This document shows positions 24,920 to 63,341 of a stretch of 64,000 bases of DNA, in pieces. The position numbers and the translations under genes were made by a program. Source of the DNA: Eutreptiella sp. 'Long Island Sound 2002' (lineage: Eukaryota; Protista; Euglenida); NCBI GenBank assembly GCA_964036045.1, contig OZ038378.1, forward strand, positions 84,196,001 to 84,260,000, read 5' to 3'. Position 1 is the first letter of the stretch. Each line of letters starts with the position of its first letter. The notes under the pieces are model-generated. The model worked only from the letters and a program-made list of their open reading frames with translations. It was not told where the DNA came from and did not search any database.

Positions 24920-25150
24920 GGGTGAACTTGTTGCCCTAGCATGATGTACCATGATGGTGCAAGACAACTTATTGTCCTAGCGTGATTCACCATGATGGTG
25001 CGGGGCAACTTGTTCTCCTAGCATGATACACCGCTATCTCAACTTGTTGCCCTAGCATGATCCACCACAATCTTCACGGCCAGCTTGCTGTCCTAGCATG
25101 ATATACCACTTTTTCAACTTTTTGTCCTACCTAGTATGATGTACCATTGT
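24920..25150 (+). repeat. About six ~35-42-bp tandem units with core AACTTGTTGCCCTAGCATGAT (candidate left subterminal repeats)
   Basis: The core recurs at about 24925, 24967, 25008, 25040, 25083 and 25115. The reverse complement recurs at 63939-64000. Confidence 0.85.
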
Positions 25151-27929: not shown

Positions 27930-30900
27930 GCGATGGACCTGCCATATCAAGGCACTCTGCTATCTACCTAGATGCACTAGCGGACTTGAAATCGTTGCCC
28001 AGCATAGGAACCCACCATGAGACAAGAAGTGTTGAGATGGTAAAGTAACAGTCATAGTGGCCGCCCCAAAAATTTTGGGGCTCGTAGACCCGCCATATCC
28101 AAGCACTATGGAATCTACCTGGATGCACTGGCAGACTTGAAATTGTTGTCAAGCATAGGAACCCACCATGGGATAAGAAGTGTTTTGAGTGTGAGGTAAC
28201 ACTCATAGTGGCAGCCCCAAAAATTTGGGGCTGAATGGACCCACCATATCCAAGCACCATGCAATCTACCTATGTACATTCACTTGCGGCCAAGCATAGG
28301 AACCCACCATGGGGAAGGAAGTGTTGAGAGGGTGAGGTAACACTCATAGTAGCTGCCTCAAAATTTTTGAGGCGAATGGACCCACCTAGACGCACTAGCG
28401 GACTTGAAAATGTGGCCAAGCACAGGATGTTGAAGTTGAAAGCATGCACTAACACTTAGAGTAGCTGCCCCAAAAACTCTAGACTGAGTGAACCCGCTAT
28501 ATGCAGTCACCATTTAATCTACCTAGACACACCGGCGGACTTGAAATTGTTACCAAGCGGGGGAAGTTGCCATGGGGAGATGAAGTGTGCGGTAACACTC
28601 ATAGTAGCTGCCCCGAAAACTCCAAGCTGAATGAACCCGCTATATAGGAGGACTATGTAGACTACCTAGACGCACCAGCGGACTTGAAATTGTTGCCCAG
28701 CATAGGAACCCACCATGGGATAAGAAGTGTTGAGAGGGTGAGCTAATACTCATGTAGCTGCCCCCCAAAAATTTTGGGCTGAACGGAGCCGCCATATCCA
28801 TGCACTATGCAATCTTCCTATGTACACACCTTGGCTCACTTGAAATCGTTACCAGAGAGGTTCACCCCAAAGTTGTGGGGCGGCTACTATGAGTGTTACC
28901 TCAGCCCTTCAACACTTCGTTTCCCATGGTTGGTTCCTATGCTGGGTACCAACTTCAAGTCCGCCAGTGCGCCCACGTAGTTTGCAAAGTGCCTGGATAT
29001 GATGGGTCCATTCGGCCCAAATATTTTTCGGGCAGCTGCTGTGAGTGTTACCTTACCCTCTGGATCCGCCATTTCCAAGCACTATGCAATCTACCTATGT
29101 ACACACACTAGCGGACTTGAAATTGTTGCCAAGCATAAGAACCCGCCATGGGATAAGAAGTGTTGAGAAGGTGAGGTAACACTCATAGTAGCTGCCCCCC
29201 CCCCCAGAAAATTGTGGGCTGAATGGACCGCATCCGAGCACTATGCAATCTACCTATGAAACTTCATTGGCGGACTTGAAATTGTTGCCAAGTGCATGGG
29301 AAACGAATGGTTGACAACGCGGGGCATTACCCATAGTAGCTGCTCCGGAACTTCTGGGCTGAATGGTCCCGCCATATCCAGGCACTGTGCAATCTACCAA
29401 AACGCATGGGCATACTTGAAATCGTTGCCAAGCATAGGAACCCACCATGGGATAAAAAGCAGAGTGGTCCTTAATGGGGGGGAAAAAAGTGCTGCATTAC
29501 ACAGCTTTTCCAAAAAAGCCCGCGGGCGCAGGCACACCATGTGTTGGCAGTGGGCGACCGGCGGTTCGTGGCGGTTGGTAGCGGATGGTGGCGGTTGGTG
29601 GTTGGAGATTGGTGGTTGATGGTGTTTGGTGGTGTTTGGTGGTTGGCGGTTGATCGCCGTTGGCGGTTGGCGGTTGGTGGCGAGTGGCGGACGGCAGCGG
29701 TTTGTGGTGGGCGGCTGATGGTCCCTTGGGGTGGTCCCCAAGGGCGGTCCTTAACAAAAGAAACATATAGTCCCTTATGGACCCCCTGATAAGAAGTGTT
29801 GAGACGGTGAGGTAAGGTAACACTCATACTAGCCGCCCCAGAAATTTTGGGGCGATGGACCTGCCATATCCAGGCACTATGCAAACTACCTAGCGGACTT
29901 GAAATTGTTCCCAGACATAGGAGCCCACCATGGGACAAGAAGTGTTGTGAGGGTGAGGTAACATTCATAGTGGTAGCCCAAAAAGAATTGAGGCGAGTGG
30001 ACCCACCTAGACACACTAGCGGACTTGAAATTGTGGCCAAGCGTACGAACGCACCATGGGAAATGATGTTTTCAAAGGTTGAGGTAACACTCATAGTAGC
30101 TGCCCTCAAAAATTGGGGTTGAATGGACCCGCCATATCAAACTGCCAGTTAATCTAGACACAGCGGCACACTTGAAATTAATGCTAGGCCCGGTAGCCTC
30201 ATGGAGGTTGAAGCATTGAGAGCGTGCTGTAACACTTACAATAACACTCATAGTAGCGACCCCAAAAATTTTGGGGCGATGGACCTGCCATATCCAGGCA
30301 CTCTGCTATCTACCTAGATGCACTAGCGGACTTGAAATCGTTGCCCATGGCAGGTTTCTTGGCTTGGCAACAATTTCAAGACCGCCAGTATGTCTAGGTA
30401 CACTGCATTGGTGCCTGGATATGGCGGGTCCTTTCACCCAAAAATCTTTGGGGCGCCTATTATGATAGTTACCTCACCATCTCAACACTTCTTACCCCAT
30501 GGCGGGTTCCTATGCTTGGCAACAATTTCAAGTCCGCCAGCGCGTCCAGGTGCATTGCATAGTGCCTTGATATAGCGGGTTCATTCAGCCCAGAAATTCT
30601 TGGGGCACCTACTATGGGTGTTGCCGCAAGCTCTAAGGTCTGAAAACTTCTTATCCCATGGTAGGTTCCTCCGCTGAGCAACAATCAACAAATCCACTAG
30701 TGCGTCTAGGGAGATTGCATGGTGCTTGGATATGGTGGGTCCATTCAGCCCCAAATTTTTAGGGCTGCCACTATGGGTGTTACCTCACACTCAAAACACT
30801 TCTTATCCCATGGTGGGTTCCTATGCTTGACAACAATTTCAAGTCTGCCAGTGCATCCAGGTAGATTCCATAGTGCTTGGATATGGCGGGTCTACGAGCC

Positions 30901-33900
30901 CCAAAATTTTTGGGGCGGCCACTATGACTGTTACCTTACCATCTCAACACTTCTTGTCTCATGGTGGGTTCCTATGCTGGGATATGAAGTATTGAGAGGA
31001 TGAGGTCACACTCATAGTAGCTGCACCAAAAATTTGTGGGCTCAATGGGCCTGCCATATCTAGCCACCATTCAGTCTCCCTAGACGCATTGTTGTTGATT
31101 GCCCCAGCCGTCAATTAGGCAGAAGAGAAGGGGAAAGGGCACAAGCAACCATGTTTCAGATTCCCAGGGACGTGCCCAGTGCCCACGTACAGGGCCCCGA
31201 TACAGGGCTTTGTGCCTTCGTTCATTGGTCTCAAAGTGAAACGGACACTGCACAGTGGAGGAAGCGCAACACAAAAGAATGAACATTTGCAAAATCTGTA
31301 AAAGCGCGCATTGATGAATTATAAGACAAACATCTGACATGCAGCAACCTGCATATTCGCCCTTTGTTTGCACAAATCAACTTCGAAACCTGTAACACAA
31401 AAAAAGGCAGAACCAAAAGCAACTTTCAAAACGACACATCAATTAAAATGTAACAAGGCATTGCAGCGAAATGGAACAAACCCATTCAGAGTTCACTGTT
31501 GCAACCACACGTCAAAGTACAAAGAACGTTATGATACAAGAACAAGCACAAAACAGGCACAACCTGCAAAAAATCAACTAATGCTCATTGAATTCTGAAC
31601 TTCAATTGAGCTTGACTTCTGAATTGCACTTCAAATTCATTATTTAACTTGAAAGCTGAACAAAGGGGCATGCAAGTGCACACCCGAGTAACCCCACGCA
31701 ATGCATTGACCTAACATGGCCCAGACACATCAGAAAGGAGTTCTGACATGGCAACGAACATGTGGCCCAGCGCGGGATGTTGACCCATCAGCAGTGCTGA
31801 TATGCATGGGGTGCTTGCTTGTTGGGGAGGAGAGGGGGACCGGTGTGGTGCGCGTTGCAGTGTCCGTTTCACTTTGAGACCAATGAACGAAGGCACAGAG
31901 CCCAGTCAATTTGAGGTTTGGTGCGCACGCCCCAAAATCTTTGGGGTCGCTACTATGAGTGTTATTGTAAGTGTTACAGCACGCTCTCAATGCTTCAACC
32001 TCCATGAGGCTACCGGGCCTAGCATTAATTTCAAGAGTGCCGCTGTGTCTAGATTAACTGGCAGTTTGATATGGCGGGTCCATTCAACCCCAATTTTTGA
32101 GGGCAGCTACTATGAGTGTTACCTCAACCTTTGAAAACATCATTTCCCATGGTGCGTTCGTACGCTTGGCCACAATTTCAAGTCCGCTAGTGTGTCTAGG
32201 TGGGTCCACTCGCCTCAATTCTTTTTGGGCTACCACTATGAATGTTACCTCACCCTCACAACACTTCTTGTCCCATGGTGGGCTCCTATGTCTGGGAACA
32301 ATTTCAAGTCCGCTAGCGCGTCTGAGTAGTTTGCATAGTGCCTGGATATGTCCGCCAATGAAGTTTCATAGGTAGATTGCATAGTGCTCGGATGCGGTCC
32401 ATTCAGCCCACAATTTTCTGGGCGGGGGGGGGGGGGCAGCTACTATGAGTGTTACCTCAACCTTTGAAAACATCATTTCCCATGGTGCGTTCGTACGCTT
32501 GGCCACAATTTCAAGTCCGCTAGTGTGTCTAGGTGGGTCCACTCGCCTCAATTCTTTTTGGGCCACCACTATGAATGTTACCTCACCCTCACAACACTTC
32601 TTGTCCCATGGTGGGCTCCGATGTCTGGGAACAATTTCAAGTCCGCTAGTGCGTCTAGGTGGTTTGCATAGTGCCTGGATACGTCCGCCAATGAAGTTTC
32701 ATAGGTAGATTGCATAGTGCTCGGATGCGGTCCATTCAGCCCACAATTTTCTTGGGGGGGGGGGGGCAGCTACTATGAGTGTTACCTCACCTTCTCAACA
32801 CTTCTTATCCCATGGCGGGTTCTTATGCTTGGCAACAATTTCAAGTCTGCTAGTGTGTGTACATAGGTAGATTGCATAGTGCTTGGAAATGGCGGATCCA
32901 TTCACCCCAAAGTTGTGGGGCGGCTACTATGAGTGTTACCTCAGCCCCTCAACACTTTGTTTCCCATGGTTGGTTCCTATGCTGGGTACCAATTTCAAGT
33001 CTGCCAGTGCGTCCACGTAGTTTGCAAAGTGCCTGGATATGATGGGTCCATTCGGCCCAAATATTTTTCGGGAAGCTGTTGTGAGTGTTACCTTACCCTC
33101 TCTAGTAACAATTTCAAGTGAGCCAAGGTGTGTACATAGGAAGATTGCATAGTGCATGGATATGGCGGCTCCGTTCAGCCCAAAATTTTTGGGGGGGGAG
33201 CTACATGAGTATTAGCTCACCCTCTCAACACTTCTTATCCCATGGTGGGTTCCTATGCTGGGCAACAATTTCAAGTCCGCCGGTGCGTCTAGGTAGTCTA
33301 CATAGTCCTCCTATATAGCGGGTTCATTCAGCCTAGAGTTTTCGGGGCAGCTACTATGAGTGTTACCTCACCCTCTCAACACTTCCTTCCCCATGGTGGG
33401 TTCCTATGCTTGGCCGCCAATGAATGCACACAGGTAGATTGCATAGTGCTCGAATATAGCGGCACCATTCAGTCCCAAATTTTTGGGGCTGCCACTATGA
33501 GTGTTACCTCACACTCCAAACACTGCTTATCCCATGGTGGGTTCCTATGCTTGGCAACAATTTCAAGTCCGCTAGTTTGTGTACATAGGTAGGTTGCATA
33601 GTGCTTGGATATGGTGGGTCCATTCGGCCCGAAATTTTTTTGAGGGGGGGCAGCTACTATGAGTATTACCTGACACTCTCAACACTTCTTATCCCATGAT
33701 GGGTTCCTATGCTGGGCAACAATTTCAAGTCCACCGGTGCCTCTAGGTAGCCTACATAGCCCTCCTATATAGCGGGTTCATTTAGCCTGGAGTTTTCGGG
33801 GCAGCTACTATGAGTGTTGCCGCACACTTCATCTCCCCATGGCAACTTCATCCGCTTGGCAACAATTTCAAGTCCGCCGGTGTGTCTAGGTAGATTAAAT

Positions 33901-33977
33901 GGTGACTGCATATAGCGGGTTCACTCAATCCAAAGTTTTCCGCGTAGCTACTATGAGTGTTACCGCATGCTTTCACG
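27930..33977. repeat. Array of ~150-bp repeats arranged as a large imperfect palindrome (arms ~28437-30290 and ~31925-33977) around a spacer
   Basis: Unit gcactatgcaatctacctagacgcactagcggacttgaaattgttgccaagcataggaacccaccatgggataagaagtgttgag...gtaacactcatagtagctgccccaaaaattttgggctgaatggacccgccatatccaa, period 151 at 27952/28103/28254. Diagnostic variants are mirrored (28501-28620 vs 33820-33960; 30050-30280 vs 31930-32160). Confidence 0.88.
29456..29787. mobile_element. 332-bp insertion with (GGCGGTT/GGTGGTT)-like microsatellite and a 5-bp GATAA target duplication
   Basis: It splits a 150-bp unit at ccatgg-GATAA-gaagtgtt. GATAA occurs at 29451-29455 and 29788-29792. Confidence 0.75.
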
Positions 33978-36079
33978 TCTCACCTAGTGTGCACATCAGA
34001 TGTATTGGAGCCCTCCGAACGTGTAAGCGCCAGCAATGGGGTGGCTGCAATGATGGACCTATGAGCACGGGTATCGACATTCTACACTCATCCTCTGCTG
34101 CCACAGTACACCCCGCCCCTCCCACGTCTCACTTACCCCCCACCCTTGTCATCATCCCCCCTATAGGGGGATTGTCACTTTGACAAAAAAGCGGGAACCC
34201 CCCCCTCCCGGTCCAACGAACACTTCCGTTCCGATGGTATTATTTTAATTAGGTACTTAATTAGGTACCAGGCGGTTTTAGGTTAAAGGTTTGGGGAAAT
34301 GAGGGGCTGTTGTGATTGGTAATTTGTAAAGCACGTTGTAAGGGAATGGTGTCCCTCAACTACAGGACTGCTATTTCCCACCACGCCTCATTCTCTGCTA
34401 TAGAAGCAGTACCACACTGGTGGGTTGTCCGTCCCAAAAGTGCCCATTCTGCCCGTGCCAAGAACAACAAGGCCCCAAGTCCTTGAAGGCGCCGAAGGAA
34501 AATAGGTTATATTGGAATTGGTTCGGTTTTCATGCTACAATCATGTGGTGCTACCCCCCCCCTCCCCCCTCGTGGGGGGACCGTCATGACCGGCCTGACC
34601 AGCCTCACCCTATCAATACTTCTTATCCCATGGCGGGTTCCTGGGCTTGGCAGCAATTTCAAGTCCACCACCACCAGATTATCCAAGGCAAAGGAGGGTT
34701 CAGGAGTGGGTGGTTCAAAGATCCCACTGACAACACCAAGCACCTCTTGGCCTTGGCCTGGGGCTTTGTGCAGCTCATCAATGGGCCTCCTTTGCCTCCT
34801 CGTGCTGCATCCTCTCGGCATTCAGCTTGTCTTTGTGGCGGCAGGCCTTTTCCAGGCCACTCTACCATCACTTTGCTCTTCTCCTCATAGGCATTGCCCA
34901 TACCAACCTTGACGAAGCCATTCATTTGGGAGACTGCCACTGCACAAAAGAAAAGAAATGGGCAGCGGTGAAAGTAGGGATAGTAGACGGGAGAAATCCG
35001 GACCAGCTACCAAGTCCAAATGTGCAGTGATGCTTTGACCACAATGAAGGTTTACTGTTCATGGGTGTGCAAGGAAATTACTCTAGGCGGTACGTCTAAC
35101 ACAACCCCCCGAAACAACGAACCACGCAATGCACGGCGTGGAATGCATTGCGCACATGTTCCCCACACTTGTGTGCCATCGAGTGTGTCAGCTCTAGAAG
35201 CTCATGGCGGGCAGCGCTGTCAAAACACTCTCAATCAAGGTGAGCCTTCCGGGGCTCCATCCGCAGTGACGAGACGTCCTTTAATCGTGCGTACTTGCTG
35301 TACGTACAAAAATTTGGCATATCGGCTTTGCCTCTCGTGACACTGTGGGTTACCTCTACACAAAGTGGTGCAAACTCCTCTGAAACAGCTGCAGCGCACC
35401 ATCGTTTTCCTGCATTGGAGGGGTAGCAAAGGTTTTTCAAAGAAAAGGGAAAGATCTCATTTCACTAAGGAGCATGCTTCTTTGGAGACCACCCTTTGCA
35501 ATGCCCAATGGACTTGTATGCAGCACCGCACGCGGAGTACGTGACCCACAACATGCTACAGTGGGTTGAAAACTGTGGAAGATGGTTGCCAGCTCGTGCA
35601 CACACATTGAGTGTGTGGAGGGCCTTTCCCAATGCAACTGCACTGAAAACGGACGTAGTTTTGGGGCACCGTCCATAGGCACATATTGAGTCCACTGCTC
35701 GCTAATTTCAAGTTCATGGCGTTTTAAGCATGGTCGAGCGCAGAGTTGGGCTAAAACCTGTGAAAGAGAAGCATCCACCAAGGCGCCCTCTCCCCAATCA
35801 TGCAACTATGTGAAACAAACAATGCCGATCAGTTCCGTAATGTCTTGCCATGAAGAAACACATATTCGCGGTGAGCGTGCGCTGTCAAGATAGGTGCCAT
35901 GCCTTCGTAATGCACCTTGCACCATGGCATGCTTCGGCCACACCAACGCTACTAGGGAAGGGCCCGTCACTATGGCCCAACCTAGCAAGCAAAAGTGGCA
36001 TGGCCCCCGGGATGTGCCGTCCATGTGGCATCCACAAGGTGCAATTGCTGCATACCACTGCCGCGTGCCATCACTTTTC

Positions 36080-38816: not shown

Positions 38817-40340
38817 TCACTTCTTGTTATGCTTCTTCGCCAAACTGATGCAAGACTTTAGGTGGTCCTTGGTGATTTGCACCACTCTACACTGGCATGT
38901 CTGCACCGTTACGTTCCGGAAACCACACTCACAGGAAAATGGGACTTGTGTCACAGCGATACACTCCATTTCCACCTTGTCACGCTTGTCACGTGCCAGC
39001 TTGTCAACCCGATAATGCACGTCAAGTCCCTCAATTTTTTCCACCCAATCAACCTTCCAGCCGCTCTTCATCTCTTCGCGTGCAAAGGCAAACCAAACTT
39101 TGGACTTGTCGGTGGTATACGTTGCCATAATGCTGTTGAGGGCGGGAGGTGAATCCTTTACATGCTTCAATGTGACTTGTCGAGTCTCTGCAGCACCACA
39201 TGGATTCTGCGTCAAGGCCATATCATCATCTTCCGAAGGAATGACGTCGGGTGTGCTTTGAGTTCCAGGTGTGTTTTGAGTTTGTGACGGTTGCGAGTAC
39301 TCATGCAACTCTGCGGGTTCCTCGTTGAACCGCACCTTCTTGGAACGAGGTTTTGCCTCGGCACTTGTGCCCTTTCTCTTGGTACCTTTCTTAGGTTTCC
39401 CATCGTTGACATAGCGGTCGCCCCTTGGTTGTCGTTCCTTGGCCGGAGCCTTCTGTCTTGTCCGCAATACCCAAAACCTATCCGCTACTGTGTCAGAGTA
39501 CCGTTCCACGTTTTGCCTCTGCAAACCAACTAGGGCATCAGTTTCCGTGACAATACGGTACTTGTCAACCAAGCTTTTGCCCTTCGCCTTCACTGGTCGA
39601 TGACTGCTCTCCACCGCATTGCTATCCCGCGTGCTAGCTACCCAGTCCGCAAACGTCTTCCCTTGATGCAAATGACAAAGCAACGCATCCACCTCCGGTG
39701 CACGCCAGAACTTTATGAAACCCTCAAGGGCTTTGTAATGCTTTGTCAGCCAATCCCACATCTCCGCACGTGCCTCCTTTGACATGGAAGGAATGGCCCT
39801 GCATCGTTCTTTGAACATTGCAGAGGCAATCTCGCTGTCTATCGTGTTGGACCACTCCTCCACACATCGCAGGAAGTGAAGTAGGCATCCTTGGAACACC
39901 CGGACCACAAAGGCTTCAAACTCATCATCGGACAACTCAATGTTTTGCTTCTTTAGGTACTCTTTCAGAGCGGACTTCAGTCCCTTGAGCTGGGCCTGCG
40001 AAAAATCCATGACCACTGTTAGCCACTGCAAAGGATTGAAACTCGGGTCGGTCTCCTTTGTCAAGTCGAGGAACTTGAGAAATGCCTCATGATAAAACCC
40101 AGCATCTTGCTTTGAGGTAGCCATTCGGAACGTGGTCCACCATTTGGTCAAGTCCTCGTCAAACACCACAATGTTGAGAAGGTACTTCATAAACGTATGG
40201 TCCCAAAATGTTATGTCAACCTCCAAAACCTTGCCTTTTGCCGCAATCTTCAACATGCCGTCACTAGCAAAGACAGGCCTTTCAGGCGTGTTGGTTTTGA
40301 CAGACCGAAGATAATTTGTCATGTCGTCTGGCAGCCAATG
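38817..40340 (-). CDS. MULE/Mutator-type DDE transposase catalytic region (3' part of the interrupted RecQ-MULE gene)
   Basis: LEVDITF (D1, ~40216), VVMDFSQAQLKGL (D2, ~40006), FQGCLLHF (CxxH), DSNAVESSH (E, ~39610) and a C-terminal Cys cluster (FSCECG...TCQC). The first 18 residues of track ORF 38817..40394 are read from the nested element's TIR. Confidence 0.88.
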   Translation of the reverse strand, partial: HWLPDDMTNYLRSVKTNTPERPVFASDGMLKIAAKGKVLEVDITFWDHTFMKYLLNIVVFDEDLTKWWTTFRMATSKQDAGFYHEAFLKFLDLTKETDPSFNPLQWLTVVMDFSQAQLKGLKSALKEYLKKQNIELSDDEFEAFVVRVFQGCLLHFLRCVEEWSNTIDSEIASAMFKERCRAIPSMSKEARAEMWDWLTKHYKALEGFIKFWRAPEVDALLCHLHQGKTFADWVASTRDSNAVESSHRPVKAKGKSLVDKYRIVTETDALVGLQRQNVERYSDTVADRFWVLRTRQKAPAKERQPRGDRYVNDGKPKKGTKRKGTSAEAKPRSKKVRFNEEPAELHEYSQPSQTQNTPGTQSTPDVIPSEDDDMALTQNPCGAAETRQVTLKHVKDSPPALNSIMATYTTDKSKVWFAFAREEMKSGWKVDWVEKIEGLDVHYRVDKLARDKRDKVEMECIAVTQVPFSCECGFRNVTVQTCQCRVVQITKDHLKSCISLAKKHNKK

Positions 40341-40779
40341 TACCCTTCGTGAACGGGGGTTAAGTGGCCGTTTGAATAATTGCGTGAATTTCACGTGAAT
40401 TTACCCAAATTTTGAGGTTTTTGGGGGAAAATGCCATATTTTTGGATCCTTCCGAGGGATTTGAGGGGCCAAAATTCTTCCCCCGGCTTCATTACGCATC
40501 ATCCAATGAAAGTCCCGCCCCAAAAGCATCCATCATGTCCGAACCGTGCCCAAAACGAGAGGTGCCGAAACCCGGCAAGCCTGTAGCCGATTCACAGGCG
40601 TGAATTCACGTGAATTCGTACGAAATTCGCACGAATTTCGTACGAATTTCGTACGAATTTCGTACGAATTTCACGTGAATTCACGTGAATTCATACAAAT
40701 TTCACCCTTGTGCACCCCCTCATTTGTCCTAACACCCGGGGTACCCCCCCCCCAATGCACCCCTGCAGGCACCTTGGCT

Positions 40780-41081
40780 ACATGCAACATGTGCACATGT
40801 GTGTGGGTGTGCCTTTGTGTGGGGTGTGTGGATTTGTGTGGGTTTGTGTATGGGTGTATGGTTGGGTTTGCATGTGGGTGGATGCATGACTTCCTGTTTG
40901 TGTCTACGTGCGAGCATGCGTCTGTGTGTTGGTGTGTGTGGGGATGTGGGGGCCACCCGACCACATACGCACACAAACCCGTCCCAAACCTCACACCAAC
41001 ACCCACACACCCACACACACAACCACGGACCCATGGATACACACCCACACACAAACACGCACCCACGCACACAAACCAATC

Positions 41082-41113
<32 letters not shown>

Positions 41114-42010
41114 CACACCCACAATGATCCCGCCCCACATACCTAACCACGACACATCCACTATGCAGGTGTGTGTGCGTATGTGTGGCTGGGCAGTTTG
41201 TGGGTGTGGGTGTGGGTGGGGTGGCAGGGCGGCTTCACTCCACTAATGGCATGTGGGTGTGTGTGTGTGGGGGGGGGGGTACATGTACGATTGTCTGTTT
41301 GTTTCTGGGTGTGGGCGTGCGCCTGTGTGTGTGGGGGGGGGGTGAGGATGTGAGGAACACCAAACCATGCACATATACGCACAAGCCATACACACGCATA
41401 CACACACACCCTTCCCGCACCTCACACCAACACACGCGCACACACAAACACACACAACCACACACCCAACTACACATGGACACACCGACCCACATACACG
41501 CATCCGCACAAACCCTTCCACACACACAGGCAGACACACATACACACACACAGAACCCCCCTCCCCTAAACATTTAACCGTGACACATCCACTGTCCAGG
41601 TACGTTTCATTGATGGTATGTGGGGGGGGGGGGGGTGCATGACTGTCTTTTTGGTTCTGCGTGTGGGCGCGCGCCTGTGTGTGTGGGGAGGGGTGAGGAT
41701 GTGAGGAGCACCAAACCACATATACGCACAAGCCATACACACACACACACACACACGCACACATACAGACACACCCTTCCCGCACCTCACAGCAACACGC
41801 GCGTACACACAAACACACACAACCACACACCCAACTACACATGGACACACCGACCCACCCACAGAAAAACACACACATATCCATCCACAGAAACCCATCC
41901 ACACACACAGGCAGACACACACACACACACACACACACAGAACCCCCCCCCCCTAAACATCTAACCGTGACACATCCACTGTCCACGTACGTATGAGGGT
42001 GTGTGGGCGG
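40780..42010. repeat. (CA)/(GT)-rich low-complexity blocks with internal ~370-430-bp duplications
   Basis: Alternating GT- and CA-rich tracts. The motif cccctaaacat(t/c)taaccgtgacacatccact recurs at ~41135 (variant), ~41563 and ~41950. The ORFs here are VC/HT repeat artefacts. Confidence 0.85.
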
Positions 42011-42014
42011 GCAG

Positions 42015-42299
42015 TGTGTCATTGCAAGCTTGCGCGTAGCAGCGCGGAGCCTCATCCAGAAGGAAGAGCCGAGAGTCGAGATGGCCGCGAAGGCCATGAT
42101 CAATGCCATGAGTTGGCGCGCACTTCCCACCTGTACTACACCCTCCATGCTGCTGCACTCTGTCAGACTAGAGTCAAACTCAACAGGGTCTTCTTTCCCC
42201 GCTGGAACACCCAAGCCCGTTCCCTTGGCGGTTGGTTCACCAGCCAGCATCTAGGGACAGCAGGAATCTCGTTGATCCATTCATGCGCGTCAATCAGTC

Positions 42300-42359
<60 letters not shown>

Positions 42360-42525
42360 GCTAAATCTCTTTGCATTGACAATCAGAGCACTGGGCAGAA
42401 GTCACCTCGCGGAACCAGCCAGCAGGTCCCATCGCAAAGCTGTGTTTCAATTAAACAGTCAGATTCCCCTGCGTAGTACACAGTTCCGAGTAGACACGGG
42501 AGCATACTGTAAAGTCGGCGCTGAC
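42015..42525 (-). rRNA. Isolated fragment (~0.4-0.5 kb) of eukaryotic LSU (28S-type) rRNA gene
   Basis: Reverse complement reads GGGGAATCTGACTGTTTAATT...GTGACTTCTGCCCAGTGCTCTG...AAGCGCGGGTAAACGGCGGGAGTAACTATGACTCTCTTAAGGTAGCCAAATGCCTCGTC...GACGCGCATGAATGGATCAACGAGATTCC...CAGCGGGGAAAGAAGACCCTGTTGAGTTTGACTCTAGT, the conserved LSU core. Core is 42120-42500; outer limits are approximate. Confidence 0.95.
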
Positions 42526-43531
42526 TTGATTATTTGCTGCCAAAGCATGAGCAACTAGCACATGAGAGCCATGGGGATACACAAAACCTGTGAAGAGAAA
42601 AAGGATACCCTCCCTAACCTTAACCGCACTGCAACAAGCAAGACATCCTCATAACCCCACACCCAGACACTCAGGGGCTGTAAGTGGGGGGTCTCCTTGC
42701 CCCCCCCCCCCCCCTCCCAACCCAAGACGTGGTTGATTACGCTCCTATGGTATGACCCAATGGACCCCCCCACCCCACCCTCATGCATCTACTAGCAACT
42801 ATAACCTTTGCCCTTCCAAACAACTGTGTGAGCAATGCAACAATGGTTTGACCCCAATGGACCCCCCCACCACTGCATCCACTATCACCTATAACCTATG
42901 CCCTTCCCAACAAATTTGTGAGCAATGCAACAAAGATTAAGAAATGTAATGTGTATTGTTTTGATTTGTTATTTGTGTTCTAGTGTAGAATACATCTAGG
43001 CTAGAATGATTCCTGTTCTAGTCTACGTTCTAGCTAGATGTTGTGGGGTAGAATGCCCTCGCGATGTCGCTTTAGGCTAGAACGAAATTGTGCGTGCTAG
43101 CGTGTATCTAGGGATCTACAAAACAAATTGTTCAATATCCAATGTGTGCAACAAATAGCAGTGACAAGACAAAATTGGGGCCGATTCGTACGAATTCGCA
43201 CGAAATTCGCACGAAATTCGTACGAAATTCGTACGAATTTCGTGCGAATTTCGTGCGAATTTCACATTCTCGTGGATCTGTGAATCTAGCGTGAATTTAT
43301 GCGTGAATTTGGGTGCGTGAATTTCACATTCACGCGAATCTCACCAAATGTGTTGAACCATGCGACTACTTCAAACCTCTAAATTGCACACATTTGTTGG
43401 ATCTTACTTTGGGCGAAGATAGCACGACAAAAGCACACAATGGCACCAAGTTACGAGCAAAAAACAGCAAAAATAGGTGAAATTCACGGTACCGTGAATC
43501 TCGGATTCAAACGGCCGGTTCACGAAGGGTA

Positions 43532-46324
43532 CAAATATGCCTCGTCTTTGAGCCACCGCTTCAACAAATGATGGGCATCTTCATAATCATCCCTCTTCAA
43601 CACTAAAGCCCGTTCTTTGAGCTGCTCAATCCTCATGGTGTTTGTGTACATGGTGTTCTCGCCCGGCGGTGTCTTGCCGGTTGTCAGCTTCTTCATTAGT
43701 GCCTCTCGGGGCGTGAGATTGGGGTCGTCAATGAACCACTGTAAGATCTCATCATCCAAGTGTGTAGGCGGCTTGAAGGCTTTAAGCACTGGGTGAGAGT
43801 GTCCAGCCCAACCATTCACACTGGGTGGGTCATCGCCAGGAGCCAACTCCAACGTGTCTCTGCGGATTAATGCAAGAAGTCGAAGGCGGTTGTATTCATC
43901 AGGTTCCACGGACCCCTGGAACAGAACTGGGTAGAGGTGAAAAATGCGGAAGTCACACCGTTTTTTCTGCATTTTTCCATGTTGGCAGATCACGGTTTGG
44001 GCGTTGTTGTCCCTGGCCCGGCAGGAATTTGCTTTGCAAACGAGCGCGCCAGCGCAAGTCCACGCCTGCGAGGCTAGGTGGCAGCCAAAACCTTCATCAT
44101 ATCCAAAATATTTCTTCACGTGGCTAGACCGTGTTAGCTCAAGGGATGCTGGAAGTATGTCGTCGGTCCCATAAGGCAAGTCGTACACATCTTCTGCCAC
44201 GTACAAGGTGTCACACTTTGGACAATCAATGGGCTTGTCAAGCTTCACATATTCCCTTTTCTCCAGAAGCTGAAGGAGCTTTGGCTTTGCTTGTAGGCGC
44301 TGAGCTCGGGTGGATGGGCCTTCTAACACCATGCGCCGTTGTCCGGGCACCTTCTTCTCGCACTGTTCAAGTGCGAGGGACATGGCAACAGCATAGCAGT
44401 GCTGGCAACGGTAGCCACCAGCAGCAGAGCCGTCCTCAGCCACTAGACCGCATGTCCCCGCTGCTTGCTCCAATCTTCCCCTTGAATTCACGGCAATGCT
44501 CACGTTGCAAACTTCTGAATTTGATGGCATCACCACGCAAGCTTCAATCTTTAGTCCAAGCGTTTCCCTTGGAGTCCAAGCGAAGTGGTCGATTTGGGCT
44601 GCGTGCACCTCATCTACAGTGAGAAGGGTTCCACGAAATAGCCGCTTCACATCAGCAGTCGTCATAGGAAGCGGGTAGGCATCCTCCAGCGCATTTGCAG
44701 CATGCTCACTTAAATTTTGAGGCGCTTGCGGCAACGCCTTTTCCAAATGTAGGATGTACGAGTCTTTGTCATTGAACTCCACTTCCCCAAGCTTCAAATT
44801 CATAGTCACACTGTCGATGTTCGGGATCGCTTTCACCAACTCCCAATCCATGCCTTTCATGATGACAGCCCTCCATTGGTCTTTCGAGCCCTTGCTCCCG
44901 CAAGCATGCTGGCTAGCAATGCCCACCTCAAAGAGAGCATTACAAAGCTCCTGCCCATATCGCTCGTAATGGTCTTTGGGTCGCACCCCTTGAATGAGGT
45001 CTAAGCAGTGCCCAAGGCAAATGCCGTCGCTTTTGTCGCACAAGGCTAAAGCCGGAAGAAAGAGGCCAAGCACAAACCCCGCGTCTGTTGGTGGCCTGTT
45101 CTTCACGCAGTTATCACAGCGAGTGCCACAAGGCTCCAACAGCACGTGGTCGGAATGCTGGAACAAATTCTGCCACCGGCAACCTGGGGTGTGCATCAAC
45201 ATATACATACATGTGTAGTCGTTCAAGGTGAGGTGGTAATTTGCATGGGCCTTGACCTTGTCTTTGTGCCAGTTGGCAAGGGTACGCAGGGAGTGCTGGT
45301 GGTATAGAATGTGAACCTCCCCGCAATCTGACGTACCGCGGGCAAGGCGCCCCAATAGCTGAATCAGCTGCGTTATGGAGGATGGCACACTGGTGAAGAT
45401 GAGTGTCCGCAAGCCGGGGACATGCCAACCCATTTCCAAAGCAGCAGTGCAGCACACAATATCGATGAGCCCTTGCTCCAAGTCCTTAAGGACGGCCTCA
45501 CGGGTAGAAGATGGTGTTGCACCAGTGAAGCTCGCCACTTTAAAACCCTTCTTCTTCAACATATTGACCATGTTCGTGCACTTTTCGACGTTGGTGAAAA
45601 AGATCAATGTCTTGCCCCTTACAAGGGGAAGGACCAAGTTCAGGAGCATGACGTCTCTTTGAGGTTTCACCGGTTGAGCGTAGTGGTGAGAATCCATTGA
45701 TATTTCTTCTCGGTAGAGAATGCCACGGACGTTCACTGCATTTTGAAGGTGTAGGCGGTCGATAATGGCCTGTTGCTCAGGTGTTGTGGCCGTTGCTGTG
45801 CATGCGTACCACGGCACGGTGGGCAGTCTTTGTCGGCAAATCCCAAGCTCCGTCCATTGCTGCCCAAATGTTTTGTCACTTCGGGCGACCTTGTGAGCCT
45901 CGTCTGCAACAAAGGCCACAGGATCCAAATCCACCAACTTGTCTAGGGCGTCGTTGGACAACAACACCTTCTTAGGAGTGGTGTACACCATAGCTGCACC
46001 CGGGGAGATGTTCGGAAACGGGGTGTTTGCCTCCAACTTGTAGGCCGCAATCCCTAACCGTTCACATTCCTGTAGCTGTGTGGTAATAATTGCTCGCAAA
46101 GGCTCAAAAACAATCACCGGTTTACGAGTGATGTGCGCAAGCATTTGGGCTGGGAGTGACTTGCCACTGTTAGTTCCCGAAACACAAAGCACGTCACGGC
46201 CGTTGAGTAGGGCACGCAAGGTCTTTTTTTGGTGCGGATAAAGTACTTTGCCAAGGGCATGCTCCGCCGCCGCAATTTCAGCGCCCCAATCCGGTCCCTG
46301 GATATGACATGTCCATTGCGTCAA
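43532..46324 (-). CDS. RecQ-family SF2 helicase + RQC Zn-binding region + SWIM-like + WRKY/GCM1-like Zn finger (5' part of the interrupted RecQ-MULE gene)
   Basis: YPHQKK (motif 0), GTNSGKS (I), VFEPLRAI (Ia), DEAH (II), TFGQQW aromatic loop, TATA (III), TAALEMG (V), QLLGRLAR (VI), C...CRW...CGTRCDNC (RecQ Zn site). Then GTCG...YRCQHC (SWIM-like) and WTCAGALVCKANSC...CQH...CDF...GHSHP (WRKY/GCM1-like). The track ORF's stop (43520-43522) lies inside the nested TIR. The track start at 46324 is TTG; an out-of-frame ATG at 46349 (MDEMDARMLDAMDMSYP) may be the real start. Confidence 0.92.
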
Positions 46325-46354
46325 GCATTCTAGCGTCCATTTCGTCCATAAGCC

Positions 46355-49071: not shown

Positions 49072-52000
49072 TTAGTTGGAGCTCACCATGTTGCTGCCTC
49101 CATGACCCTTTCTTGGCTTGGAGAAGATTTGCTTCCGTTTATAAGCAAGTTTTTGAGGCCTCCCCGCCCCAATCCTGCTGCCACCATGCCCATTTTCCTT
49201 CGCATGGTGAAGTCCTTGAGGTGAAATGGGGCTACCCACGGGGAACCAAACCAACCAACCCTGCTGCCGCACCTCATTCGATGCCATGCCCTGAACAAAT
49301 GTTTCCTTATTTGTATACGCCCTAGTGCCTTGCCACCACTTCACAAAACTGTCGAAACTTCCCTCCTTGTGGGAGGGAGATGTAAACAAGAAATGAGGTT
49401 TGGCACTCCCCCGCCCCCCTAGGCACACTGCTAACATCCTCACAATATCAATGTCGGGGCAGGGTTGAACAATCCTGGCTTCCGCATCTGCTGCCTTTAG
49501 ATCTGCCGACAACGTTGCCATGACCTTGTAGAAGTGCTCAGACCGCTGAGCCCTCTGTAGCAGGAGCCCTTCCATCCATTTGTGAAGACTTTCGAGGAGT
49601 GCATAGCACTCCTCAACAGTGAAAACATCGTACCGCTCCTGGGTGACTTCATTGAGATTCAGCAAACCGTCCCGTGCTAGGGCTCCCAAAATTTTGCTTG
49701 CAGTGAAGCCACAACGTGGCTGCCCATCTGCTGCTCGTCGGACCTTTTTTGTTGGATTCAAAGGCGTGGGGACCTGGCGTCGGAAGCCGGGCTGGCTCCA
49801 GCGTTGAACTTTCACATTCGCGCCAGGCACCGCCCTACGCACTATGCTGGCAAGGAGCTTGCACACTCGTCCAATGACTGAAGAAGTGGCAGCTCCTGCC
49901 TCAAGAATCTCAACCTCCCATTCCAACCCACCCTCACTCCTTGTTGCTTGGGCGATGACAACAAGGCAGTGGCCCACCCCATCAAAGGCACCCCCTGTAC
50001 CTCGGACATCTCTTCGCATATCTTTTGCCTGCGCGGTTCGCTTGGCCTGACCCTTTGGTGCAGGCTTAGTGCAAGCATCGGGTGCTTCCGGCTCCAAGAA
50101 GCCGTTTATGCATATGCGGCGCAAGAAGGTTAGCGCAACATGGCGGCTCAAAGGCTCAGGGAGGTTGCCTTGCCAATGGCGAGCTCGGAGGTCAGTGGAA
50201 AAACCTTGCCGGTATTCAACCAAAGCAACAAGGTTAAGCTGCGCCAAAAGTGGGTCAGTGTCGGGTCGATCAAGTTTCAGCAGCCGTTCGCTCGGAACAT
50301 TCATCTCGAAAGCCATGACGTCCTCAGGGTTGTTGAAATACTCCTTGACAGGTCGAATGGTGGTGTCCCATTCTCCGGAGGAGTTTGCTTGCCCAAGTTG
50401 TCCTTCCATTTGTCGAAGTGCACTCACAAAAAAAAGCCCCCGAACCAACACCATGTCCAACTTGCATTCCCCTGAACATGGCCACGGAATAGTAGAGAGT
50501 CCAACGGGGACACCTTCAACAAAGTCCCCGCCAGGCCTGCCGCTTCCAAAGATCCAACTAAATTTTCTTGTCCTTTCCTCCTTGGAAAAATACATAGCGG
50601 TTGGGCCATCTTTGTTGGGACCTAATGGTGTAGCCCAAAGAACCCGAACCTTATCACCTACCTTCAGAACACCTCTTGCCACTTGATCGGCGACACAAAG
50701 GGCTGCAACAGGGGAGGCCTCCTCCATCCCATTTTGAGTCCCCTTCCCCGTACTGTCCGCTCGTGTTCCCAATTCACTCTCCACATCTTGGAGTCCCCTA
50801 ACCCTATCACTCGAAACTGCAATCGGAATTATGGGTGGGGCTAGCATTGTGGTTGTGGCTTGGGGTGTGGCCAGAGCTAGGGTTGTGGCCCGGGTTGAAG
50901 CTGGGATAGCAACCAGGGCTGGGGCTGGAGCCGCGCTGACGGTTGTGGCTATGGTTGTCGCTGGGGCTAAGGATGGAGCTATGGCGGCGGATGGACTTTG
51001 GGTTGGGGCAAAGGAGGCGGCTGGCATTGTGGACGGGGCCAGGGCTCGGGTGGGGCCGGGAGTTGTGGTTGGGGTTGTGGTTGGGGCTTGCACTGGAACT
51101 TGAACCGCGGTTGTGGTTGGGGCTAAGGATGGGGCTAGGGCTGTGGTAGTGGCGGTTGCTAGGGTTGGGGTTGTCGTTGTGATTGTGCATGGGGCTAGCG
51201 TTGAGGCCAGGGCTGGGTTGGGGGCTAGGGTTATTCCCGCAATTGGGCTTGAAGCTGACTCGGAGGATAGGGCTCGGGGGGGTTGTGGGGATGGGGCTGG
51301 GGTTAGGGCTTGGGGTGTGGCTACAATTGTGGTGACGGGTGATCCTTGGGTTGGGGCCAAGGATGGAGTTGGCGTTGGGGTTGTGGTTGTGGTTGCGGTT
51401 GGTGCTCCGGCTGATGCTTGGGCTGGGGATGCGGCTGCGGCAAGGGCTGGGATTGTGGCTTGCCGGGTAGATTTGGCATGGGCTGTGGCCTGGGCTGGTA
51501 TAGGGACCGCGGTCTGGGCGTTGGCAGAGGTTGTGGCGGAAAGGACGCCTTGGGCCGGGGTTGTGGTTGGGTCTGTGGCTAGGGCTAGGGCCGGGGATGG
51601 GGCCGGCGTTGGTGCTTGGGCTGAGCCTATCACTACGGCTGTGGTTGGGACAGAAACAAAAGTCGTGGCTTCAGGTGGGGTTGCATGTGTGGCTTCAACT
51701 AAATCATTATATCCAACTACCGCTTCACCTTGCTTACACTGGCTTCTCTCGTGGGATGTACCTCGGGTGGAGCTTCGTCCCAGAAATCGTGAGATGGCCC
51801 CATGCAGCTCTTGCCGAAAAGCAGTCGGGTTGAAATCCGGGAAGAGTTCGGTTGATCGAAGGGGAAGATGGGAGAACAGACATTCTTGCAGTTTGGGCAC
51901 TATCCCTGAACGTTCATGTGCAAGGAGCTTGCCAAACCAGCATACAAATACCCCACAGTCCCTATTATTATCTTGCTTTCGAACCGGGACCATCTTGACT

Positions 52001-53624
52001 TCACCAAAATGGAGCGTTGAGGCATTCGGCTCAATGGATCTCCTTGCCATTAGAAACATCTGGATTTTGTCACACATTTGCCGAGAGATGAATGCTGCCC
52101 CACCGCGGCCCGAGTCGAAAACACACAAATGAATGACCAGTCCAACGGGTAGCACCAAAACACCAAAAAAATGATTTCCGGTGTGCACTGGGAAAAAAAT
52201 CTTTTTACCCAGCAATTGTGACTTCCTAAATATCTCGGTAGCAACCTTCTCAGGCCCGTTTTTCAGCATTGTGGCCACTGACAAAGGAAGAAAAGCAATG
52301 TCAGAGCTCAAGTGAGACAGATAGTAGTCGATGACTTGGGCATTTAGCCATCCCCGATGAGACCCCGCAACATTGATACACCGGTCAAGGTCTGCCGCAC
52401 TTACTAGCGCAAAGTCATCAGCCTCGGTAAAAACATCGTTCCCTCCATTCTCAGCAGCCTCCTCCATATCCACGTCCATCGGGCTGGCTTTAGAACGTGA
52501 ATTTGGCAATGGCAGTTGAGGCGTGGTGGTGTCGGGGGTGCCCACGCTAGCAGCGCCGATGTTGAGTGTGTTGGGAGTGGCCACAACGGTCGTAGTGTCA
52601 GTGCCGGCACTGGACGTGGACTAAGAGAACAAAAGAGTGCTATGAGTTGGTGCCCTCTATGAGTGCAAGCACGAAGTGATAGCATTGCCAGACTCAAAAA
52701 GGGCATCTACACGATTTTGATGCAAACATGAAGCACACACCGTTGGCCATTGTTGCTGCTCCCTAATCTCCTCCAAAGCCATCTCTGCCGAAAGGGCAAC
52801 ATCACGAGATGAGCGTCAGAGCTAAACATTGGTTGCAGTGACCGCACTTCAGGTTGGGTGGTAGTACGAATCAGCATGGTAGCTGCGGCTGTAGCGGGAT
52901 TCGTCGTGGACATGCCGGTGATTGCTGCAAAGCCTTGTCACTTGTGCTAAATGGGTAATTCACTGCACACGTGAACTCAAAATTGATTCCATGAAATTCA
53001 ATATGGACACCAACACATACCTTTGGCACTTGAGCATCATCCCTTGTACCCTGCGCTGGAACCAACTCCGCCGGATGCGCAATTTCATGGGGCCAAGGTT
53101 TTGGGCTAGGTTTAGATGCTGAGGATGGTGAAAGCGGTTGATGCGCAGCAGCGGCAATGTTGCTTGTGTTGGTCGCGGTGAGGGACACACCAGCACTGGT
53201 GGTGGACGTGGCCCTCGGTACTGTCTGAAATGAAAATGGTAGTGCTTTGAAACATTGGAACCCCCCAAACCCCGCCACGTGTCCCACATACGTGCATTCA
53301 GGTACATAGCTAATGCATGGACAAAGGGTGCCATGTAAATTTGTGCATTCCAAAAGAAGAACTCTAATAGTTCCCTAACGGCTTCCTATGCAACGTCAAG
53401 GTCCCTTCATTCGCATTCAGTCTGCAGGAATCATGAAAAGATTTATCAAATTGCAAAGATCCATGTCCTAAGAGTTCAATTAAGCAAGGCAAGCTGCAAG
53501 CAACAAGGCACAACACCTGATTTGTTTCCCCATTCCGAATCCTTTTTTTCAGCAAGAGGCGCTCCAACTTCTCCTGTGCCTGCAGCGCCGCCTCCGTCAA
53601 TTCGTTGGCGACGCCATTAGACAT
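49072..53624 (-). CDS. Intron-containing Ulp1/SENP (peptidase C48) family protease gene with a Thr/Pro/Ala-rich linker and further diverged domains
   Basis: Large exon from 52620 (acceptor ttctcttag): GWLNAQVIDYYL, FFPVHTGNHFFGVLV (His), CVFDSG (Asp), KQDNNRDCGVFVC (Gln, Cys). Upstream GT-AG exons: 53624-53517 (MSNGVANELTE...NQ), 53224-53021, 52924-52848. The exon 2/3 junction is one base out of phase in this model. Confidence 0.85.
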
Positions 53625-55929: not shown

Positions 55930-56800
55930 CGTGGACATCACTATGCAATCTACCTAGACGCACTGGCAGACTTGAAATTGTTGCCCACCATAGGAACATG
56001 CCATGACATGTGAAATGTAGAGAATATGCGGTAATGTTGATAGTCGCCGCCCCAAAAATTCTGGGCCGAATGAATATCCGGGCACTATGCAATCTACCTA
56101 TGTACACATGGCGGACTTGTCATTGTTGAACCCACCATGGGATGAGAAGTGTTGAGAGCGTGCGGTATTATTGATAGCAGCTGCCTGCAAAATTTGGGGC
56201 CGAATGGACCTGCCGAATCCAAGCACTATGGAATCAACCTGTGTACACACACCAGCGGACTTGAAATTGTTGCCAAGCCTAGGAACCCACCATGGAATAT
56301 GAAGTGTTGAGAGCGTGCAGTATTACTCATAGTAAGTACCCCCAGATTCCTGGGCTCTCCTTGTGCTAGCAACCCTGCATGATTGTGAAATCGATGTTGA
56401 CCATCAAATTGTCTCCAAGAAGTCCACTTGAGCTTCACAAGATGTTTCCTCGCGGTTGCCGCCTGCGTTGTCTGATGCCGCCTGCCATGTAACGTCCATT
56501 GGCCAGCCATGAATGATATACTGGCCAGACCACTAGTCGAATGGCAAATTTACATGGTAAATGTGTAAATTTTACAACAATGCCCGTTTTTTTTTGGCCG
56601 TGGCCGTCTGTATATGTGTTTATAGGTGACAGGATCCTATGCTTGGAAACAATTTCAATTCCGCGTGTGCGCAAATTGCATAGTTGCTTGCATATGGCAA
56701 GTCCATTCAGCCCAGAATTTGAGGGGCAGGTACTGTTTCCCCACGGCGCATGCTCTCGATACTTCTTATCCCAGTTCCTATGCCTGACAACATTTTCAAG
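55930..56800. repeat. Degenerate copies of the ~150-bp repeat in both orientations
   Basis: cactatgcaatctacctagacgcactggcagacttgaaattgttgccc... at 55940-56340, and the opposite orientation at 56630-56800. Confidence 0.8.
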
Positions 56801-57467: not shown

Positions 57468-57868
57468 GGCCTGGCGGGAAGACGGCCCAGCCTGGCGGGA
57501 AGACAGCCCCGGCCTGGGCGGGAAGATGGTCCAGCCTGGGCGGGAAGGCCCAGCCTGGCGAGAAGACGGCCCATCCTGGCGGGAAAGCCCAGCCTGGCAG
57601 AAAGACGGCACAGCCTGGCGGGAAGACGGCCCAGCCTGGCGGGAAGATGGCCCCAGCCTGGGCGGAAAGACGGCCCAGCCTTGCAGGGAGGGCCCGCCCT
57701 GGCGGCGGGAGGGCCCCGCCTGGCGGCGGGAAGGCCCAGCCTGGCGGGAAGACAGCCCAGCCTGGCGGGAAGACGGCCCAGCATGGCGGGAAGGCCCAGC
57801 CTGGCAGAAAGACGGCACAGCCTGGCGGGAAGACAGCCCAGCCTGGCAGGAAGACGGCCAAGCCTGGC
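57468..57868 (+). repeat. GC-rich ~21-bp minisatellite (CAGCCTGGCGGGAAGACGGCC)
   Basis: Unit visible directly with 15-, 18- and 21-bp variants. It abuts the 181-bp satellite. Confidence 0.92.
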
Positions 57869-57875
57869 ACACGAC

Positions 57876-63098: not shown

Positions 63099-63341
63099 CG
63101 CTACTTCTTCAGTGGTGTGTGTTGTATGTATGTGTGTGTGTGTATGTGTGTGTATTAGATGGAAGCGAACAACGCAGAGCGGAAGTACTGCGAGGAATGC
63201 CTGAAAGCCATGCGGCCGAGGGAGCGAGAAGGACAAACCAACCTTCACTGGATGGCAGTGGTGCAAGTCTGCCACCCTCTGAATCTGAGACCAGTGAACC
63301 CAGCCCCAGCTCCAGGTAATCCGCTTTTGTGTTTGGCATGT

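Follow-up and report, generated by a model that had tools for sequence, protein, structure and literature searches.

A probable Mutator-superfamily transposon of Eutreptiella with a predicted RecQ helicase-transposase polypeptide

A 64,000-nucleotide stretch of the genome of the euglenid Eutreptiella sp. 'Long Island Sound 2002' (GenBank assembly GCA_964036045.1, contig OZ038378.1, positions 84,196,001 to 84,260,000 of the forward strand; the whole stretch is called the window below) probably harbors a defective copy of a Mutator-superfamily transposon of about 38-39 kb, whose transposase gene is predicted to encode a RecQ helicase and a DDE transposase in one polypeptide of at least 1,688 amino acids (aa). 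From its N-terminus, this polypeptide would consist of a probable SET domain, an acidic linker, a RecQ helicase and its zinc subdomain, a putative DNA-binding region rich in Cys and His, the DDE catalytic domain and a SWIM-like finger. The window copy is unable to make the protein because it has suffered a deletion at the 5' end of the gene and carries a nested insertion within it. Among the paralogous copies, locus L001, on ctg9051 of ERZ25074135 at about 7-32 kb, retains the transposase open reading frame (ORF) intact.

Two ORFs lie on the minus strand of the window (Table 1), and their sole separator is a 3,194-bp element with terminal inverted repeats (TIRs) at 40340-43533. The original prediction, made from the letters of the window alone, had described just this arrangement, and it is borne out both by the ORF calls and by the empty site in L001, where the two flanking BLAST alignments to the window overlap by 3 nt. 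That overlap implies that, besides 40340-43533, the insertion added one copy of a 2-3-bp duplication (AA or AAT). When the downstream piece was used in a word-indexed protein search, it matched a 90% cluster of 22 sequences from one ENA assembly. Three of its members, P0001, P0015 and P0005, are uninterrupted across the junction (...KDEAY-WLPDD...), with neither a stop nor a separate gene between the helicase and the DDE domain, as had been anticipated. P0005 is the product of a stop-free ORF of 1,688 codons (L001:10001-15067), far longer than chance would be expected to yield at a G+C content of about 50%. The two ORFs of the window represent halves of one transposase gene, in which a RecQ helicase is joined to a Mutator-type enzyme. 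The earlier suggestion that removal of 40341-43531 would unite them was correct as to frame but not as to footprint, since the true junction, DEAY-WLPDD, is two codons shorter. Likewise, the joined protein of 1,438 aa deduced at that time is a genuine in-frame fusion but not the full-length product, being a version truncated by a 1.86-kb deletion at the 5' end.

The N-terminal half of the polypeptide is, by homology, a divergent RecQ-family helicase. E. coli RecQ is the best match to residues 280-710 of P0005 (E = 3.4e-29), with an alignment that extends through the zinc subdomain; BLM, RECQ5, WRN and RECQ1 are the next matches, and the DEAD-box RNA helicases follow more than 20 orders of magnitude behind. 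The best family is NCBIfam TIGR00614 (recQ_fam), at 1.8e-45, and the next unrelated family stands at 2.4e-15, 30 orders away. Neither P0005 (155.6 bits) nor P0021 (194.6 bits), a distant relative introduced below, reaches the curated recQ_fam cut-off of 219.8 bits, which argues for a divergent member of the RecQ family and against an orthologue of a cellular RecQ. Identity to the cellular RecQs is about 25-30%. Motifs I (GKS), II (DEAH), III (TAT/SAT) and VI (QxxGRxxR) of superfamily 2 (SF2) helicases are all found in both P0005 and P0021. In the zinc-binding subdomain, the sequence CR..L...EPCG.CD.C of P0005 aligns to E. coli RecQ, and the Pfam model RecQ_Zn_bind gives weak matches to P0021 (0.0026) and to a metagenomic locus, L015 (0.0007).

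Much of what can be said about the other half of the polypeptide comes from an alignment of its distant relatives. When the C-terminal piece or P0021 served as the query, word-indexed protein searches returned only the cluster of the query itself, but HMMER, run in full over 1.8 billion representatives with query residues 940-1560, gave 63 matches, 37 of which were aligned. The consensus of these 37 sequences reads D.T ... DFSxAQ ... GCxVH ... TTNAxESxN, and residues D1223, D1293, C1333, H1336 and E1425 show no variation or almost none: C1333 and H1336 occur in 35 of 36 rows of the alignment, and N1422 and E1425 in 30-31 of 31. Weak Pfam matches to MULE occur in six of the 37 relatives and to Transposase_mut in two, with no further recurrent family among them.

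An AlphaFold2 (AF2) model of the DDE domain, built from this alignment, reached a pLDDT of 79.9 and a pTM of 0.73. The best 30 structural matches to the model among the Swiss-Prot entries of the AlphaFold database (AFDB) are, without exception, IS256 or MULE-derived proteins (NOF-FB, IS256, FRS/FAR1-related proteins, ZSWIM1/3/9 and K. lactis alpha3), and the best PDB match is the ISCth4 transposase, a member of the IS256 family. By VIA-align the Z score is 12.8 for ISCth4, 10.2 for Hermes, 9.4 for the P element and 9.2 for RAG1. A shape search of the ESM Atlas found MULE or SWIM clusters in seven of the nearest ten rows, while no Pfam family is attached to the remaining three, among them the best match; language-model neighbors are also MULE/SWIM clusters. 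As modeled, the C-terminal half adopts the RNase H fold of DDE domains of the IS256/MULE type.

Two regions of conserved cysteines and histidines accompany the catalytic core. After the DDE domain, P0021 has a CxCx6CxH finger that scores 18.9 bits with Pfam SWIM against a cut-off of 19.6, and in P0005 a variant, CxCx9CxC, occupies the aligned position. This C-terminal finger of P0005 appears to be SWIM-like, and it would lie at the usual SWIM position of MULE transposases, many but not all of which have such a finger. The middle region, between helicase and transposase, carries a conserved C..C..C..CxHG..C and GH(S/N)H in P0005, P0021 and P0029; it has no Pfam match, and an AF2 model of residues 880-1100 gave a pLDDT of 30. 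The pattern suggests a putative DNA-binding module of WRKY/GCM1-like type; in MULE transposases, zinc fingers of the WRKY-GCM1 or FLYWCH type precede the catalytic domain. An internal CxHC near residue 892, once considered 'SWIM-like', was set aside for the C-terminal finger, as it is not conserved in P0021.

The 1.86-kb deletion took about 260 first codons of the gene, together with a probable SET exon, from the window copy, and the missing segment is present in L001, L002 and L003. In L001, an ORF of 150 codons upstream of the start of P0005 (L001:9477-9929) shows a weak resemblance to the first half of the SET domain of SETD7 (E about 1.4; 16 of 17 matches), and the first 95 residues of P0005 (L001:10001-10285) have weak matches to the remaining half of a SET domain (Pfam SET 0.0067; SUV420H and SETD7). 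A short non-coding gap parts these two weak half-matches. The likely arrangement is a SET domain divided by an intron, with its exon spliced onto the helicase-transposase ORF.

Taken domain by domain, the original prediction of a RecQ helicase fused to a Mutator transposase fared well. The helicase motifs GKS, DEAH, TAT and QxxGRxxR and the transposase residues D-D-CxxH-E that it listed are all present, and RecQ is indeed the best-matching family, whether judged by E. coli RecQ or by TIGR00614. The order from RecQ core through DDE to a Cys-rich tail was also correct, though the probable SET domain upstream had gone unrecognized, and the tail itself had been seen for its cysteines but not as a probable equivalent of a SWIM finger.

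The fusion is not confined to this family of copies. P0021, a protein of 1,666 aa encoded by a single ORF in two other ENA assemblies (L005 and L006, with a third contig that also carries it), is collinear with P0005 in both halves, matching the helicase at E = 7e-25 and the transposase at E = 6e-30 with 25-26% identity, and all of its helicase and DDE motifs are intact. TIRs were sought in L005 and none were found. A profile scan of JGI metagenome contigs yielded a further case, L015 (JACCDP011251491.1), where, within L015:1254-6907 and on one strand, protein-kinase ORFs are followed by a RecQ-type ORF (DEAD, Helicase_C and RecQ_Zn_bind) and then by a DDE homologue. The helicase and DDE of L015 share a frame, the gene being spread over several ORFs (introns or decay). 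The N-terminal module thus varies, a protein kinase in L015 standing in place of the probable SET domain, and other relatives, for instance P0075 (1,282 aa), are without the helicase. The recurrence of the RecQ-then-DDE order in two lineages with no more than 26-28% identity to the present one argues that the fusion is old and has been maintained, and collinearity makes a single origin likely.

The ends of the transposon that houses this gene emerge from a comparison of its copies. On the left, the window copy and those at L007, L008 and L009 lose homology at window positions 24792-24805 and pass into unrelated flanks, the complete left tip, GGATGACATATGCGTGGAC..., being common to the window and L007. 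On the right, L011, L012 and L014 share the sequence ...GTCCAAACGCCATAC(C/A)CTC and then run into three unrelated flanks. No inverted counterpart of the left terminus was found within the window, whose last nucleotide falls short of the right end; the right terminus, ...GTCCAAACGCCATACCCTC, is located some 265 nt further on by comparison with L011, where it lies at L011:17982. The window copy therefore begins at 24792 and runs about 265 bp beyond the window, a span of about 39.5 kb. The TIR is formed by window positions 24806-24943, which match L011:17831-17967 in inverted orientation (138 nt at 89%), together with some 13 nucleotides at the very tip that match poorly, and so measures about 150 bp. 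A 9-bp target duplication, CCAGCACCC, is found on both sides of the copy on ctg10792 (L007 at its left, L011 at its right), at boundaries that had been set independently by the comparison of copies. This copy is a 21.7-kb internal-deletion derivative that has kept both ends, with the satellite joined directly to the sequence at window position 38856. The extent first assigned to the element was too small, as its TIRs fall outside and the true size is about 39 kb, while the MULE-type identity first given to its DDE domain is upheld by the IS256/Mutator fold and signature, the 9-bp target duplication and the long TIRs.

There are at least six copies of the element, 96-99.7% identical and in different flanks. 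The window copy and L004 have both of their defects in common and are 99.7% identical, which indicates that a copy was duplicated after it had been broken, whether through transposition in trans or as part of a segmental duplication. Copy L002, at 97%, carries two frameshifts and one stop, and L003 a 2-bp deletion and an insertion. Public runs from two organisms contain DNA with the empty site and with the 5' end undeleted. Upstream of the transposase gene is a second long ORF with an Ulp1/SENP-like N-terminus, about 900 of whose 1,170 residues belong to no recognizable family. This protease ORF is intact in the window and in L004 and broken in L001 (L001:4433-6145); no examined copy has the transposase and protease genes both intact.

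Table 1. Features of the window (positions in nt; terminal inverted repeat, TIR)
Feature	Position	Strand	Remarks
Putative 9-bp target copy TGCACAGCG	24783-24791		Outside left terminus
Left terminus and TIR	24792-24943		Begins GGATGACATATGCGTGGACTAAGGGTC; four copies diverge here
Internal array of 150-400-nt repeats, direct and inverted	27933-33992		Common to all copies
3' ORF	38817-40394	-	525 aa; no Pfam match
3' part of transposase ORF, DDE core	38817-40339	-	Alignment and AF2 model
C-terminal CxCx9CxC finger	Starts 38919-38936	-	Aligned with P0021 CxCx6CxH finger
DDE core, E	Within 39600-39623	-	
DDE core, CxxH	Within 39867-39893	-	
DDE core, D2	Within 39990-40016	-	
DDE core, D1	Within 40206-40226	-	
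Nested non-autonomous TIR element	40340-43533		3,194 bp; 15-16-nt TIRs; 2-3-bp target duplication
5' ORF	43520-46324	-	934 aa; Pfam DEAD and Helicase_C
RecQ-containing 5' part of ORF in window copy	43534-46301	-	Pfam, RecQ alignments
Cys/His-rich middle region	43787-44413	-	Pattern common to P0021 and P0029
Zn-binding Cys cluster	45107-45136	-	After RecQ core
RecQ core, motif VI	45335-45361	-	
RecQ core, TAT	45785-45802	-	
RecQ core, DEAH	45887-45904	-	
RecQ core, GKS	46157-46177	-	
Junction of 1.86-kb deletion relative to L001:8920-10779	46297-46301		Comparison with L001, L002 and L003
1,170-aa ORF, N-terminal Ulp1/SENP-like (Peptidase_C48)	49072-52584	-	Upstream of transposase gene, same strand; Pfam 2e-6, above gathering score
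Unit related to left array	55939-56343		Near right end
21-nt tandem array	57469-57868		Inside element
181-nt satellite, 25 units	57874-62400		Inside element
Right subterminal region	62401-64000		99.75% match to L011:16117-17717

The remainder of the element is rich in repeats. The internal array and the related unit near the right end are reminiscent of MULEs with multiple TIR-like repeats, and the 181-nt satellite differs in length between copies, with 25 units in the window versus about 12 in the ctg10792 copy (L011:9987-12237). At the left end of the element the base composition shifts sharply, from a G+C content of 0.59-0.69 leftward to about 0.5 inside, and the DNA further left (window 1-24000) holds ORFs that resemble those of long interspersed nuclear elements, including one with APE and reverse transcriptase domains at 2045-5299. 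The window was also searched for a dinoflagellate spliced-leader sequence, and none was found.

The nested element that splits the gene begins with GTACCCTTCGTGAAC... at 40340 and finishes with ...GTTCACGAAGGGTACA at 43533. It is flanked by AAT at 40337-40339 and 43534-43536, the duplication being A-rich and 2-3 bp in length. Arrays of an 11-nt subterminal repeat, (GAATTTCGTAC)n, are found at both ends, the interior is rich in (CA)n, and no transposase is encoded. L001-L003 and contigs of the public runs show its empty site. In contigs from the four public runs, the last 130 nt or so are covered 100-360 times as deeply as the host element and adjoin dozens of different flanks; the nested element belongs to a very abundant family. 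A reading of this insertion as a TA-duplicating, Tc1/mariner-like element, which would leave the two ORFs out of frame, was rejected by the L001 empty site.

Several observations weigh against the interpretation of the element as a Mutator transposon with a functional helicase-transposase. Pfam finds nothing in the transposase half of the query: the DEAD and Helicase_C domains expected at the outset are there, but the expected MULE domain is not matched even at an E value of 10, and the MULE and Transposase_mut matches of the relatives lie below the gathering threshold. In the DDE tree, P0005 and P0021 fall within an unresolved polytomy. The placement in the superfamily rests on the fold ranking, the motifs and the length of the target site duplication (TSD), with Academ set apart by description, and the balance of this indirect evidence favors Mutator. 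The target duplication is verified in a single copy, that on ctg10792, for which both ends are at hand. The left tip is shorter by 5 nt in L008 (L008:15302) and by 13 nt in L009 (L009:8130), the rest of the TIR being kept; terminal erosion, imprecise ends or an outer 13 nt that are not essential could account for this. The transposase ORF is intact in just one of the five copies compared (L001), and the four public runs cover the window at an even, DNA-like depth and so give no sign of expression. Finally, a role of the helicase in transposition is pure inference.

Three alternative explanations were weighed. In the most serious of them the element is an AcademH transposon, in which case the architecture is already known. 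AcademH elements combine a helicase with 9 or 10-bp TSDs (PMC10045372), and the present element pairs a RecQ-family helicase with a 9-bp TSD; moreover, Academ transposases are without a Pfam model (PMC5751038), just as the query is without a Pfam match, and the best shape match in the Atlas is an unannotated cluster from Basidiomycota. The combination of helicase and 9-10-bp TSD fits Mutator equally, however. The C/DxxH motif is nearly invariant among the aligned sequences, and Academ is absent from the C/DxxH superfamilies listed in PMC10045372; of the five that are, MuDR alone makes 9-bp duplications, which together with the fold ranking favors Mutator. Mutator TSDs measure 8-10 bp, typically 9, and 4-10 bp is given for the IS256/MuDR group (PMC10045372). 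Every named structural neighbor is IS256 or MULE, the relatives give weak matches to MULE and Transposase_mut and nothing else that recurs, and a putative SWIM finger follows the DDE domain in P0021, in the position that it has in MURA-type proteins. We regard an AcademH identity as unlikely.

The helicase, alternatively, could be a piece of host sequence that was captured in the manner of a Pack-MULE and came to lie in frame by chance, or the two halves could be made separately through splicing or internal initiation, and no functional helicase-transposase protein would then exist. MULEs do capture fragments of host genes (PMC6446971), the DNA-like public runs provide no evidence of expression, and the differences between L002 and P0005, at 78 nonsynonymous to 50 synonymous, speak for no more than mild constraint. 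On the other hand, the helicase motifs are intact in P0005, P0021 and L015 at about 25% identity, order and strand are kept, and P0021 is a single ORF. Motifs preserved over such divergence are not those of dead cargo, and a helicase about 25-30% identical to the cellular RecQs was not captured recently, so this explanation too seems improbable. Less credible still, to the point of being very unlikely, is the notion that the repeated unit is a segmental duplication, or a set of uncollapsed haplotigs, and the gene a domesticated host family. It would accommodate the more than 20 kb of collinear sequence shared between copies at 96-99.7% and the presence of two copies on one contig. Yet the points where homology stops coincide exactly or to within 13 nt, for four copies on the left and for three on the right, beyond which the flanks are unrelated; the ends are inverted repeats, a perfect 9-bp duplication surrounds one copy, and a derivative with an internal deletion retains both ends.

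A Mutator-superfamily transposon with a built-in RecQ helicase thus remains the best description of the element, and its likeness to known Mutator/MuDR elements is extensive: the IS256/MULE DDE fold, the CxxH, a TNxxESxN-like motif around the catalytic E, the 9-bp TSD, the long TIRs and, apparently, a SWIM-like finger after the catalytic domain. Even the probable association of a SET domain with the transposase has a counterpart in MuDR of Phytophthora (PMC6446971; PMC12730594). What sets it apart from known Mutator/MuDR elements is a complete RecQ-family helicase that precedes the transposase within a single ORF, and a DDE domain that Pfam MULE misses. Its size of about 38-39 kb greatly exceeds the 1.4-10 kb given for arthropod MULEs (PMC13359780). 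The word 'helicase' is absent from a 2019 survey of MULE diversity (PMC6446971), and full-text literature searches turned up no paper tying RecQ to MuDR or MULE.

Other transposons approach the present element in one feature or another. AcademH elements are cut-and-paste transposons that encode a helicase and make 9-10-bp TSDs (PMC10045372); the differences lie in the C/DxxH motif and the IS256/MULE neighbors found here, AcademH being compared by description only. Kolobok elements make TTAA duplications, unlike the 9-bp TSD found here. In the fungal KolobokH, a RecQ helicase is joined to a DDE transposase, with the RecQ downstream (PMC9587614), whereas RecQ is N-terminal to DDE in P0005, P0021 and L015. 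The Helitrons likewise combine a transposition enzyme and a helicase in one polypeptide (PMC12730594), but theirs is an HUH nuclease that supports single-strand transposition with no TIRs or TSD, in contrast to the DDE domain, SF2 RecQ helicase, TIRs and TSD of the present element. The Peptidase_C48 ORF inside the element, beside the transposase gene, recalls the plant MULEs (KI-MULEs) and CACTA elements with Ulp1-like genes, and Ulp1 is a known cargo of MULEs. Here, however, the protease ORF extends to 1,170 aa and accompanies a helicase-transposase fusion.

How such a protein might work can be sketched in outline. The DDE domain would cut and paste the element as in other MULEs, by excision of the hairpin type, and the attached helicase, with its presumed 3'-5' polarity, would act in cis on the transposon DNA. 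Two roles seem the most likely. The helicase might unwind the long, repeat-rich ends so that synapsis and cleavage can take place, or it might drive synthesis-dependent strand annealing over long tracts across the donor gap, and so restore a 38-kb element. BLM acts in gap repair after excision of the P element, and the internal-deletion copy on ctg10792 is the type of product expected from gap repair that was interrupted. The SET domain and the Ulp1-like protease would probably counter host silencing, be it at the level of chromatin or dependent on SUMO.

Drawing these strands together, we tentatively suggest that the element represents an undescribed Mutator lineage in which RecQ became fixed long ago as an integral component of the transposase. 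DDE transposons would then have recruited RecQ independently for a third time, after Academ and Kolobok. The helicase may be what permits a mobile element to reach about 40 kb, by way of end opening or long-tract gap repair, and the variable N-terminal modules for chromatin or signaling (SET here, a protein kinase in L015), along with the Ulp1-like protease, may make of it a self-contained, chromatin-handling transposon. We offer this broader picture with distinctly less assurance than the identification of the element itself.

To our knowledge, DDE transposases with fused or linked helicases are rare, and we know of no test of the part that such a helicase plays in cut-and-paste transposition. 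An intact gene of 1,688 codons, with defined ends and a defined target duplication, offers a direct experimental handle on a transposase helicase; excision assays with mutants have reportedly been carried out in yeast for the MULE Muta1. There is also a practical consequence for genome annotation, in that copies such as these would otherwise be called RecQ, SET and protease genes of the host. If the interpretation is true, RecQ helicases have been recruited convergently in three superfamilies of transposons, which would point to a general need in transposition, be it for the unwinding of ends or for the repair of gaps, that is normally met by host enzymes such as BLM.

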